64,000 nucleotides of DNA from Hyaloraphidium curvatum SAG 235-1 (lineage: Eukaryota; Fungi; Monoblepharomycota): assembly GCA_025558095.1 (NCBI GenBank), contig JAIVFI010000043.1, positions 310,001-374,000 of the forward strand, given 5' to 3'. Of this stretch, positions 11,232-17,537 are shown in pieces; positions within the stretch are counted from its first letter, which is position 1, and each line of letters opens with the position of its first letter. The notes below the pieces were generated by a model that was given only the letters and a program-made list of their open reading frames with translations, did not search any database and was not told the origin of the DNA. Made by a program: the position numbers and the translations under genes.

Positions 11232-12776
11232 ATGGATCCGAAAGAGGAGACGACGACTGCCATTGCTATTGAGAACCCCGCTCCACGGAAATCCAGCATC
11301 CTGAGCCGGGCGGAATGGCTCGTTCTGCTTCCCGCTGCGCCCTCCCCGTTGCAAGCCATGTCCGGAGCTTCTCCCCCCGCAGACCCTGCGGCGGACCTGC
11401 GGAATGCGGATCCTCTTACACTTGATTCATTCACCTCTATTCTCTCTAAGTGGACGCCTTCGCTGGCGATCTCGGTCAGGGTTCAGCGCGCGACCGAACC
11501 TTGGGCTACAAGGCCCGTCCTTCGCGGGACGCTCCTGTACCTCGTCTTTGTGCCTCTACTGGCCGTGCCTTGGGTCTTCAATGACGGCAGATTCGGATCC
11601 GTTCAATTGGCCGTGGGAACGTCCACGCTGGCACTAGCTTTCTTCGCCAGCTCCGTTGGGATAACTCTGTTTGCTGTGTATCAAGCAGGTCTCAAAGTCA
11701 TGGGAAACTCTACGACCACTGTTAAGGTTGCTTCTCGGGACTATTCGTCTCACGGTGCCGCCGGTCTTGCGAGGTGGATCCAGCTGGCGTCCAAAGTGGG
11801 CTCCGATTCCGCGGTTACAGCCCTGCTGGGCCACAACTCTAAGGACGACTTGTGCCCGTGCCCCAATGTGCAATGTGCAGGGCGTCTGCCGCGCCGCGCT
11901 GATGTTCTTCGGATAGTGGATATGTCGTTCCGGCTTTCTTTGCTGACCTTTAGTGGGTTCTCGTACTTCTGGACGCCTCTAGTTTCTACAGGCATCGCCC
12001 AACGCACCTGGACGACGCCGTGGTCTGCCGTTTTCGGCGGGCTGACCGTCGCCGCCCTCTTGAACTTTGGATGGCCAGCGGCCTTGGTGCGCTTCTCGAC
12101 CAACGTTCCACTACTTCAGCTCTCCAACCGGATCGGATGCCGCGCCATGAAGCTTGCTTCGGAAGACATGCTCTGCCGCTACCGTCTCCTGATTGACACG
12201 GGTGCACAATGGACTCGTGGAACCACTTCGGAGCGGCAGCTTTACATGGACCTCCACATTCTCTTCACAAGCAGCTGGCGGCGCCGCATTCTTCAGTACA
12301 CCGCTAGCGTCGCAAATCTATTCGCTTCTTCTGTCAACCTCCTGATGGGTTTGATCAACATCGCTGCCTGTTCTTGCCTGCCGGCTTGCTTTCTCCTTTA
12401 CCTCGTTTATACGCTTGCGATGAATCTCATCGACCTCGTCAATGTTAGCGCGGCCAATGCGCAGATTTCAGACGTGCGCTCGCTATACGCGGATGTCTCT
12501 TCAGAACTCCGCGAGCTCCGCCGGATCGCCTATACGGCACCGTCCCGACCTGATCCAGATGTGATCGCCGCGTTGGAGGCCGACGCGGAAGTCCTGGGCT
12601 CCTACCTGGATGTCGACCGCTACCGCTTGAAGTTTCTTGGTTTCGTGATGACGTACGGCGTCGTCAGGACGCTATTCGCGACCCTTCTGACGCTGGGGAT
12701 TGGGCTCTGGTCCATTCTGAGGGGTTTGGGAGTTTTCGTCACGATGGAGACGATCTGTCCGATCGTGGGCCCGTGA
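11232..12776 (+). CDS. Intronless 7-TM protein, family member 1 (GR-like/7TMIC-like); start may be 11358
   Basis: Seven hydrophobic segments; motifs shared with 27622-29061 and 35105-36577 (DPAADLR, H-x5-CxC..CAG, FxGF...T...G...I.RG.G..T....CP). Confidence 0.8.
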   Translation: MDPKEETTTAIAIENPAPRKSSILSRAEWLVLLPAAPSPLQAMSGASPPADPAADLRNADPLTLDSFTSILSKWTPSLAISVRVQRATEPWATRPVLRGTLLYLVFVPLLAVPWVFNDGRFGSVQLAVGTSTLALAFFASSVGITLFAVYQAGLKVMGNSTTTVKVASRDYSSHGAAGLARWIQLASKVGSDSAVTALLGHNSKDDLCPCPNVQCAGRLPRRADVLRIVDMSFRLSLLTFSGFSYFWTPLVSTGIAQRTWTTPWSAVFGGLTVAALLNFGWPAALVRFSTNVPLLQLSNRIGCRAMKLASEDMLCRYRLLIDTGAQWTRGTTSERQLYMDLHILFTSSWRRRILQYTASVANLFASSVNLLMGLINIAACSCLPACFLLYLVYTLAMNLIDLVNVSAANAQISDVRSLYADVSSELRELRRIAYTAPSRPDPDVIAALEADAEVLGSYLDVDRYRLKFLGFVMTYGVVRTLFATLLTLGIGLWSILRGLGVFVTMETICPIVGP

Positions 12777-12887
12777 AAGATGTCGTCAAAGATGTAAAGG
12801 TTGATGAAATCGAACGCCTTTTGCGACCTACTCTTGGCAGTCACGGATGCGGAACCCCGATCGTCGCGCTCCGCGGAAGGACGAAAG

Positions 12888-13819
12888 ATGACGTTCAATC
12901 CCACGCTGACGGAGTCCTCCGCCGTCCTGAAGGACATTCTGGGCGGAGGACGCGAGTTTGCCGCGTCCGAGCTATGGAGCAAGCGGCCCGCCGTCGTCAT
13001 GGTACGGGCTGCGCAGCTTCTACGGGAGACAGTGCGATAACGAACCACGCGCCCGTTGCACCCTTGCTGCACGTTCCTCCGCTGCTTTCTCCTTGTTTCG
13101 ACTTGTGCTGCGGCTCGTGGTCGACGTCTCGAACGGCAGGTGGTTCGCAGGCCCGGCTGATTCCTGTGCAGGGAGGAGGCCCTCGGGCTGTCCTCCAGGA
13201 AAGCCGAGCTCGACAAGCTCGGCATCGACCTCGTGGTGCGTTGGCACCGGTCACCGCAAGTTGCAGTTGATTTGACGGACGCCACAGGCCGTGGTGCACG
13301 AAGACATGGGCGCCGCCGAGTTCAAGGACTACTCTTTCCGTGACTCGCCCGTCTATCTCGACACTACCAAAGCCTTCTACAGGTGCTTTCGACCCAGCAG
13401 ATGCTACTTGTGGGGCAGCATCTTACTGTTCGACGTTCAGGTTCATCGGTGCCGGTTCGCTGATTTGGGCGGACCCCTCGGACTTGACGTCCCCCGAGGC
13501 CAAGGTTCACGGTGATCGGGCGCGCGCCAAGAAGGTCAAGGGCAACATGAAGGGCGAGGGCAGGATCATGGGTGGCCTCGTCGTCGTCAACACCGCCGGC
13601 GCCATCTGTGAGTTCGCCACTCCGATTGCAGAGGCGATTGGTGCACTGACACGCACGCTGCAAGATATCTACAACGAGAAGATCTTCGGCGACCACGCGC
13701 CCCTGGGCGGTAAGTTGATCATCGCAGCAGTACTAGTTCGGACTCCAACGCAATCGCACATTGCAGAGGTGGCCGAGGCTGCCCGAATGCTCTCCTCGGC
13801 GCCCTCCGCCCGCCTCTGA
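12888..13819 (+). CDS. SELENOU: Selenoprotein U / FAM213A (PRXL2A)-like peroxiredoxin-fold selenoprotein, Sec codon at 13158-13160
   Basis: Spliced (intron 13002-13139) ELWSKRPAVVM|VVRRPG-UGA-FLCREEALGLSS; downstream exons VVHED..AEFK...VYLD..KAFY, GNMKGEGRIMGGLVVV, EKIFGDHA match the family; SECIS in 3' UTR. Confidence 0.92.
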
Positions 13820-13867
13820 AGCGCCTCTAAGGCGGTCCTTCTGCGTCTGCTGGCTTCAGCGACGGTC

Positions 13868-13953
13868 GGCTTTGTCAAGCAACATGATGGCTTCCGCGTA
13901 AAGCACCCTCTTCTCCGGAAGGCGTGGACAGCGTGATACAACAGCTTGAAGCC
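13868..13953 (+). promoter_or_regulatory. Eukaryotic SECIS element (type II-like)
   Basis: Helix I TCAAGC(13875-80)/GCTTGA(13944-49); ATGAT core 13884-88 opposite TGAT 13934-37; helix II GCTTCCGCGT/GCGTGGA(C)AGC; unpaired AAA 13900-02; apical mini-stem CTTC-TCCG-GAAG. Confidence 0.88.
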
Positions 13954-14095
13954 TCGATAGTCGTTGATGTAACCAAAGGAAAGCACTGGACTTGGAATAA
14001 GCACTCTCCCTTCACAAAGAAAGAATCATGTCATTTCAATGAGGTTTACACCGTGCCACAGACCAACTCCAGCCGTCCACAGCGGAGATCAAAGT

Positions 14096-15505
<1,410 letters not shown>

Positions 15506-15660: not shown

Positions 15661-17537
15661 CTAAGCATCGGCAGGCAGGTAAAGGAACTGACCCGCGATC
15701 GCCGCGGCGACGACGAGGATGATCGACACCTTCCCCCCCGCCGCCTTGAAAAAGTACAGGGATATGAGCGTGAGCACGTACAGCACCGCAGACACGCCGT
15801 TGCTGTTGACCGCCCCCAGCTTGTCCTCCGCCGTGGGCAGCCTCGGGTCCGACAGCTGCACGGTGACCGAGTACCGCAGCAGCTCCATGGCGACGACAGC
15901 GATCAGCCCCGTGACCGAGGCGGTGACGCCCTCGAGCGCGCTCTGGATGGGGTCCAGCATCACGAGCCACTCCCAAAAGTCGTGGCCGATGATGGTGAAG
16001 CTAAAGCAGGGGATGAACATGCCCAGCGTCATCAGGATGGCGCCGGCAAAGGCGTAGCCGAGGTTGCCGTTGTACCCGGCCAGGCCGCCCTGGAAGCCTA
16101 CAAAGGTGACGAAGATGACGAGCGGGGCGGGGATGACGTTGCCGATGGCGATGCCGTCGAGGAAGACCTGGTTGCTGAGCCATTTGCCGAGGACGACAGC
16201 TTCCTGCTGCACGAAGGGGATGGCGGTGTAGGCGCCGCCGAAGGAGAGGACCCCGGCGACGAGGCCGAGGGCAAAGAGGTGCCCGAGGTCCGGCGGGTTG
16301 GGCGCGATGCCGATCGCCAGCGAGTTGCGTCCGGGGAAGCCGCGCGTGGCCACGTAGGCGACGTAGCCGGCGATATCGGCGGCGATGATGACCCCCGCGG
16401 CGGCGTACCAGTAGTAGGCGTGCTTCTTGTTGCCGGCGGCCCACATGCCGTTGCCGCGGTCCCATAGGAACCACAGCAGGGCAAAGACACCGAGGGTGAT
16501 GAAGAAGTTGATGCGCAGGGCCGACTGCAGGAAGGAGGCGAGGGCCAGCCAGAAGAGGACATTGCTGAACTTTTTCGTGCGGTGCGAGTGGAAAGCGTGC
16601 TCGGCGATCTTGTGCACGGCGCGCAGAACGAAAGCCGCGACGACCGGCTGCAGGGCACGGAAGCTGGCGTTGACGTACCTGGCGGCAAGCTCGGGTTAGC
16701 TCACTGGCACGCCCGGGGAGACGACGCTCTTCTTGTGAAGTCCCCAAAGAACCACGCCCTCTTGCCCTTTGGCAAATTCGGAGAGCACAATCAAGTACTC
16801 ACACGTTGCTGAACCCGATCAGGTAGTAAATGTAACTCAGGAGGAGCATCAGGAAGAAACCCGGCAGGATGAACCCCAGCCCCGCGATCAGAGCGCCAAG
16901 CCGCCCCCTGCTCAGCATTCCGAAGTAGCAGCACAGCTCTGCCGCCTCGGGACCGGGCAGAACCTGGTACACCGCGTCTTTCCGGGGGTAAGAATCAGCG
17001 ACGGCTTGGCAGACTTCACATCGGAAGAAACCCACAGACCCGGTTGAACTTCTTGATGCTGATCCATTTCTCCTTGATCACCAGCTGCTCCTTCAGCATG
17101 GCGATCTGCGCCACCGGCCCGCCCCACGCACGAAGGCCGAACACCAGGAACTTCCCGAATAGCTCCAGCAGCCCGAGCCTGGGCGCATTGCTCGCCATCT
17201 CGTCCACCACCGGCGGCACCGCACCCGCTTCGGGGTCCACAGGAGGCGCCAGCGGCGCCGACGGCCCCCCGTTCGCCGGAACGTCGACCACGATGTCCTT
17301 CCCCTCGGCCTTGTCGGCCACGTCCAGCTCGACCCCCGGGCCGCCGTTCGCGGCGCCGGCATGGCGGCGGTGGTGCAGCCCCGCGCCGTCGGTCGCCGGG
17401 TCCGCCGCAGTCAGTGTCACGGCGTCCGCAGGGGTGTCGGGAACGGCGAGCGCGTCCGCGGCCGCGTCCGTGCGCGTCGTCCCCGAGCTGGGCGAGCCCT
17501 CGCGGGGGACGAGCGCGATGCCCTCGTCGGCGCTCAT
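15661..17537 (-). CDS. Chromate transporter (long-chain CHR/ChrA family)
   Basis: [56 protein letters not shown]; two CHR halves; introns near 17040 and 16800. Confidence 0.92.

Follow-up and report, generated by a model that had tools for sequence, protein, structure and literature searches.

Whether an in-frame UGA in a spliced gene of a fungus ends translation or encodes selenocysteine (Sec) is the question raised by a locus on the plus strand of a 64,000-nt stretch of the Hyaloraphidium curvatum SAG 235-1 genome (hereafter the window, to which all positions refer unless stated otherwise). The initial annotation of this stretch had proposed a hidden SelenoU gene there, in which the removal of an intron at 13002-13139 would bring VVRRPG-TGA-FLCREEA into one frame and the TGA would be recoded as Sec. 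SelenoU1/PRXL2A (FAM213A; Pfam family PF13911) is a selenoprotein in fish, birds, algae and other organisms, and a cysteine (Cys) protein in therian mammals; to our knowledge, the biochemical function of the PRXL2A family is poorly defined. Considering transcript, homolog, ortholog and 3' UTR evidence together with the Sec machinery of the genome, we find it very probable that the locus is a six-exon, 189-codon gene for a thioredoxin-fold protein of the PRXL2A/FAM213A (SelenoU) family, the UGA at codon 45 being recoded as selenocysteine by means of a SECIS element.

The structure of the gene was read from one spliced transcript contig, which resolves six exons and five GT..AG introns, all on the plus strand. 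Exon 1 (12888-13001; 38 codons, MTFNPTLTESSAVLKDILGGGREFAASELWSKRPAVVM) reads ATG ACG TTC AAT ... GTC ATG from 12888 and is followed at 13002 by GTACGG, the beginning of the 138-nt intron 1 (13002-13139; GTACGG..CGGCAG); its boundary is given by the contig junction 13001|13140, and the exon is conserved in two orthologs, L011 and L012, described below. Exon 2 (13140-13235; 32 codons), which is delimited by the contig and by tblastn, opens GTG GTT CGC AGG CCC GGC TGA TTC CTG TGC AGG GAG GAG GCC, translated as VVRRPG*FLCREEALGLSSRKAELDKLGI, and holds the putative U-x-x-C redox motif VVRRPG-U-FLCREEALGLSSRKAELDKLGIDLV, with the in-frame TGA of codon 45, the proposed selenocysteine codon, at 13158-13160 (contig, tblastn and orthologs). 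Downstream lie intron 2 (13236-13287; 52 nt), exon 3 (13288-13382; AVVHEDMGAAEFKDYSFRDSPVYLDTTKAFY..), intron 3 (13383-13440; 58 nt), exon 4 (13441-13607; ..FIGAGSLIWADPSDLTSPEAKVHGDRARAKKVKGNMKGEGRIMGGLVVVNTAGAI..), intron 4 (13608-13664; 57 nt), exon 5 (13665-13709; ..IYNEKIFGDHAPLG..), intron 5 (13710-13766; 57 nt) and exon 6 (13767-13819; ..VAEAARMLSSAPSARL), which ends in the stop codon TGA at 13817-13819. Exons 3 to 6 are all seen in the contig, with Pfam matches in exons 3 and 4 and a public protein that includes exon 3 as further support. The coding sequence amounts to 570 nt (189 codons plus stop), and past the TGA of codon 45 the frame stays open for 144 more codons, until the stop at 13817-13819. 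The 3' UTR that follows measures 205 nt or more (13820-14024), 14024 being where the transcript contig ends.

The contig itself (2457 nt, depth 367) aligned in six pieces with zero mismatches to the window over the compared interval, 12700-14090, and 60% of the sampled words from 12700-14100 were present in one public run. This source is a single run labelled 'RNA?' and consists of assembled contigs that carry no strand or quantitative information; an intron-free contig can only be RNA, and the uncertain label is thus irrelevant to the splicing evidence. Because the contig extends upstream into, and covers, the neighbouring ORF 11232-12776, it is silent on the transcript start. We take ATG 12888 as the likely start codon because the protein similarity shared with the orthologs sets in at this point (MTFNP in H. 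curvatum vs MTTFNP and MTTFSP).

The intron and frame proposed initially hold in RNA: the exact junction of intron 13002-13139 is present in the spliced contig, as is the VVRRPG-TGA-FLCREEA frame across it. We also show that the TGA at 13158-13160 is retained in the mature mRNA, with no differing letters in the contig across exon 2. Two outcomes that the initial annotation had named as contrary to recoding, i.e., a TGC or TGT at 13158 and splicing that removes the codon, were both absent, since the transcript reads TGA and keeps it in a contig that contains all exons. These observations bear directly on two further possibilities, namely that the locus is a pseudogene in decay and that its TGA stands in place of a TGC/TGT codon through an artefact of the assembly or of the strain. 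A single base separates TGA from either Cys codon, which is the point in their favour; against them, the TGA is carried by a fully spliced contig at depth 367, the spliced gene has no other frame disruptions, and two diverged orthologs have TGA at the same codon. We regard a pseudogene or an artefact as exceedingly improbable.

The public annotation treats the locus differently. The public H. curvatum protein DFJ74DRAFT_696953 is 113 aa long and begins at the exon 3 Met at 13306, and it is without the first 76 codons, active site included. From Met 13306 onward, the whole codons of exon 3, followed by those of exons 4, 5 and 6, each match a stretch of this protein exactly and in the same order. 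Likewise, the ORF at 13340-13819, an open frame that takes in exons 4-6 together with two introns free of stops, led to DFJ74DRAFT_696953 in a protein search. A model cut to 113 aa and starting downstream of the TGA is the kind of mis-annotation by gene callers that had been predicted for this gene, and the identity of exons 3-6 with a protein of H. curvatum, phylum Monoblepharomycota, agrees with the early-branching fungal host that had been supposed from the sequence. Taken at face value, the public model implies that the UGA is a genuine stop, the product being the 113-aa protein from Met 13306 and exons 1-2 serving as a 5' leader or encoding a 44-aa peptide. TGA is indeed an ordinary stop in the H. 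curvatum genome, where the SelenoU gene and the ORF upstream of it both end in TGA. However, the shortened product would be without RRPG-(C/U)-x-x-C-REEA, the defining active site of the family, and the conservation of exons 1-2, considered below, also speaks against a stop at codon 45.

The family assignment made initially (FAM213A/SelU) was borne out. We found PF13911 (AhpC-TSA_2) matches in exon 3 (16.8 bits) and exon 4 (19.6 bits) when the exons were searched one by one; with the domain divided among exons, neither score reaches the 27-bit cut-off set for whole proteins, but PF13911 is present in the public product of exons 3-6. A phmmer (HMMER) search with the orthologous protein P0003 returned 287 relatives. 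Full-length relatives read VVRRPGC-x-x-CREEA, with Cys at the UGA position in most homologs, and the closest named full-length ones (UniRef "Peroxiredoxin-like 2A") come from Dimargaris cristalligena, Basidiobolus ranarum, Tribonema minus and Helobdella robusta. When three full-length Cys homologs were compared with the window by tblastn, exons 2-5 were covered (E 1e-14 to 1e-17), and within exon 2 LVRRPGCFLCREEA aligned over VVRRPG*FLCREEA, placing the first Cys of CxxC opposite the TGA. Similarity to the family thus continues through the later exons, as had been claimed, with exons 3 and 4 matching AhpC-TSA_2 and the tblastn alignments reaching exon 5. VVRRPG-TGA-FLCREEA fits the RRPG-(C/U)-x-x-C-REEA context of the family, the UGA occupying the first position of the U-x-x-C motif of a PRXL2A/FAM213A (SelenoU) homolog. 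The Cys-form PRXL2A proteins of D. cristalligena (RKP37601.1; VVRRPGCLLCREEA) and B. ranarum (KAK9721285.1; VVRRPGCKLCRREA) have Cys where H. curvatum has UGA; they share the motif context of the H. curvatum gene and are 42-49% identical to the ortholog query. In addition, the sequences of dozens of database relatives start precisely with [M/L]CREEA, the pattern expected of gene callers that restart just after a Sec-UGA, which suggests that Sec forms may be common in environmental data.

Set against SelenoU1/PRXL2A as known from other organisms, the H. curvatum gene agrees in family by sequence, in the RRPG-(U/C)-x-x-C-REEA motif and in the proposed Sec at its first position, and its 189 codons compare with about 190-230 aa. 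It differs in its host, a fungus of Monoblepharomycota, and in a SECIS candidate that scores poorly on the Rfam model.

Further evidence for the coding nature of codon 45 came from its conservation. Orthologs were identified on two environmental contigs, L011 (JGI metagenome 3300043314) and L012 (SRR23967301), both of which read VVRRPG-TGA-F(L)-C-REEA; two diverged orthologous contigs keeping TGA in an identical motif place this observation far beyond chance. Among the window, L011 and L012, the eight codons around the TGA show 3-5 synonymous and 0 nonsynonymous differences per pair, and over the 23 codons that follow the motif, each pair differs at 5-8 codons by synonymous changes only and at 3-4 codons by nonsynonymous ones. 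Protein-level conservation in L011 and L012 extends to exon 1, which precedes the TGA. Coding constraint on both sides of the TGA in three diverged genomes argues that codon 45 is not a real stop. Two metagenome scans yielded no further orthologs. With exons 1-2 evolving as coding sequence in three species, their differences being mostly synonymous, and with a SECIS-shaped element conserved in the 3' UTR (see below), we consider a genuine stop at codon 45 very unlikely, even though the public annotation uses the 113-aa model.

The three genes also differ in their introns. An extra intron lies between the L and C codons of the redox motif in both orthologs (L011:3027-3100 and L012:2805-2872), which the window gene does not have, and L011 is without the intron 2 of the window gene. 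Such differences in intron presence among the window, L011 and L012 indicate that intron positions are turning over within a small clade.

We then consider recoding of the UGA as Sec in light of the 3' UTR, where a SECIS-like hairpin is located at 13868-13953 on the plus strand, inside the transcript. Four lines of evidence bear on it, i.e., an MFE fold, an Rfam alignment, a scanner match and a counterpart in L012. Its ATGA at 13884 lies 64 nt past the stop codon. In the MFE fold of 13868-13960, helix 1 is formed by 13868-13880 paired with 13944-13953; the internal loop holds AUGA (13884-13887) and GA (13935-13936; 3' core (T)GA 13934-13936); helix 2 has 10 bp and a one-base bulge; and an unpaired AAA (13900-13902), 12 nt after the AUGA, precedes a 4-bp mini-stem with a tetraloop. 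The hairpin accordingly has the layout of a SECIS, namely an AUGA..AA..GA core, a helix 2 of ~9-12 bp and an AA 10-13 nt after the AUGA. The MFE z-score of the region is only -1.1. The Rfam SECIS_1 model aligned over its full length (model 1-64) to 13855-13965, with AUGA, AAA and UGAU matched; the score was 13.6 bits, where the gathering score is 35, and E was 4 even in this 111-nt search. An Rfam search of the 3-kb region returned no SECIS at E <= 10, and no match was reported by Rfam on the L012 element. The other SECIS candidates of the genome are also below 35 bits on SECIS_1 (SPS, 18.3 bits; one paralog, 22.6 bits; another paralog, no match), showing that a low Rfam score is not specific to the SelenoU gene. 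One Rfam-positive SECIS was found in the genome (L010, 36.2 bits).

A covariance model built on one sequence, the Rfam-positive SECIS R1, proved so specific to that sequence that it found nothing else, and the SECIS hairpins of the genome were not alignable in register with MAFFT; a pattern-plus-fold scanner with background controls was used instead. This scanner is home-made and not calibrated on a reference SECIS set, and it combines a sequence pattern with a constrained ViennaRNA fold (ATGA, 10-13 nt, AA, 3' GA, at least 8 helix-2 pairs and helix-1 duplex energy). Applied to both strands of the window (128 kb), it gave 6 matches, the hairpin at 13868-13953 being the best of them (-30.1 kcal/mol). 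By comparison, 95 kb of unrelated loci in the H. curvatum genome gave 0 matches, and 768 kb of first-order Markov simulations gave 19, one of which scored as well as the window hairpin. The chance of any scanner match in a 205-nt UTR on the correct strand is below about 1%. Exactly one match was present downstream on the gene strand at each of SPS, L010, three paralogous TGA-containing genes and L012. The L012 element, 65 nt after the stop, has the same architecture as the window hairpin, and 6 of the 10 position-matched helix-2 pairs are altered on both sides with pairing kept, a covariation that is drawn from one ortholog, L012. The second-best match in the window (15989-16037, plus strand, -23.9 kcal/mol) was taken as chance, given its antisense position within an ORF for a membrane protein of 318 aa (15661-16617, minus strand).

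The initial annotation had further predicted that tRNA-Sec, SecS, PSTK, SPS, eEFSec and SBP2 would occur elsewhere in the genome, and tRNA-Sec, SepSecS, SPS and eEFSec were found; a genome devoid of Sec machinery, the outcome that had been named as contrary to the proposal, is thus not what we observed. The tRNA-Sec scored 78.2 bits on RF01852 and was called tRNA-SeC with anticodon TCA by ARAGORN, SepSecS scored 198.9 bits, and SelD/SPS scored 169.8 bits with one in-frame TGA. For eEFSec, the eukaryote-specific domain III family PF21208 gave 54.5 and 28.8 bits and was silent in 14 of 14 prokaryotic controls. A bacterial selB model was also tried for eEFSec and rejected, its top candidates being mitochondrial IF-2, mitochondrial EF-Tu, eEF1A, eRF3, eIF2-gamma and LepA. 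The search for PSTK gave 30.5 bits on TIGR03574, below the cut-off, and a single KTI12-family locus; the candidate ORFs examined had no match in Pfam.

The SelD/SPS gene is located at G000:C2:990953-991939 (L006 and L007) on the minus strand. The in-frame TGA that it carries points to SPS being itself a selenoprotein in H. curvatum, and about 330 nt separate the last matched exon from the SECIS-like hairpin that follows it.

Based on these components, we propose that the SECIS hairpin in the 3' UTR, 64 nt past the true stop, would direct UGA recoding. It would recruit eEFSec and Sec-tRNA-Sec, which would insert Sec at codon 45, with SepSecS and SPS supplying the pathway. Judged from the sequence, Sec insertion at codon 45 is likely, and the resulting U-x-x-C redox centre would replace the C-x-x-C of the Cys homologs. 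The protein would then probably act as a thiol/selenol oxidoreductase, in which Sec attacks and the downstream Cys resolves.

It is also conceivable that the UGA is read through, not (only) as Sec, either as Cys or Trp by a near-cognate tRNA or as Cys via tRNA-Sec when selenium is scarce. The Cys found at this position in most homologs would accommodate such a product. Nevertheless, the complete-looking Sec pathway points to a dedicated mechanism, as does the SECIS-like element, whose placement matches that in the other genes of this genome that contain a TGA; we hold read-through not, or not only, as Sec to be highly improbable and retain recoding as selenocysteine as the reading of codon 45.

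The SelenoU gene is not the only one of its kind in this genome. Four more AhpC-TSA_2 loci with an in-frame TGA in a U-x-x-C motif were found in H. curvatum, all on the minus strand: L014 (G000:C20, about 265.5 kb; AVRRPG*LLCREEA), L015 (C23, about 427.3 kb; CPHLKG*LMCREEA), L016 (C27, about 502.1 kb; RHGYSG*WFCREEA) and L013 (C29, about 389.0 kb; FGRNLL*YVCRWEW). One SECIS-like hairpin lies just downstream on the same strand in three of the four (L014, L016 and L013), and the home-made scanner found no SECIS-like hairpin at L015. That H. curvatum has at least five PRXL2/AhpC-TSA_2 paralogs, all using U-x-x-C and with SECIS elements mostly escaping Rfam, is a proposition for which we consider the chances about even.

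The SelenoU gene is closely flanked on both sides. Upstream, the ORF at 11232-12776 (plus strand) encodes 514 aa with membrane-like segments and terminates 112 nt ahead of the start codon of SelenoU; since one contig covers both this ORF and SelenoU, the two transcripts overlap or abut. Downstream, a polyubiquitin gene with introns between its repeats (14096-15376, minus strand) is arranged tail-to-tail with the SelenoU gene, with no more than about 70 nt between the two 3' ends (14024 for the contig, ~14096 for the ubiquitin stop). L012 likewise has a downstream polyubiquitin gene on the opposite strand.

Our results can be compared with earlier surveys of Sec use in fungi. Mariotti et al. 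(bioRxiv 10.1101/314781; Nat Microbiol 2019) reported SelenoU selenoproteins in some of the Sec-using early-branching fungi, and in the preprint a SECIS was found for only 5 of 16 fungal selenoprotein candidates. There, SelenoU was missing in Gonapodya prolifera, the only monoblepharid analysed, and Hyaloraphidium is absent from the text (bioRxiv 10.1101/314781). The H. curvatum gene resembles the fungal SelenoU genes of Mariotti et al. in that early-diverging fungi use this family in selenoprotein form and that the SECIS escapes standard detection; it differs from those of the preprint in belonging to a relative of Gonapodya and in having an identifiable SECIS candidate. Amses et al. 2022 count 11 genomes of early-diverging fungi that encode Sec; among the papers searched, theirs alone mentions both Hyaloraphidium and selenocysteine, and its text contains no description of the SelenoU gene. 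Fungal SelenoU selenoproteins are hence already known, and what is new here is the H. curvatum member and the correction of its annotation.

Given that a few early-branching fungi are already known to use Sec, the result is incremental and amounts to an annotation fix, one that corrects a public gene model missing its catalytic half. It also provides a transcript-supported fungal selenoprotein gene with an identifiable SECIS candidate conserved in an ortholog, and such a SECIS is useful because most fungal selenoprotein candidates in the 2018 preprint had none found. For the Monoblepharomycota, SelenoU would be added to the selenoproteome. Should the five-paralog set prove true, no fungus described so far would have as rich a selenoproteome as H. 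curvatum, and a substantial, animal-like selenoproteome would be implied for the ancestor of the chytrid lineages.
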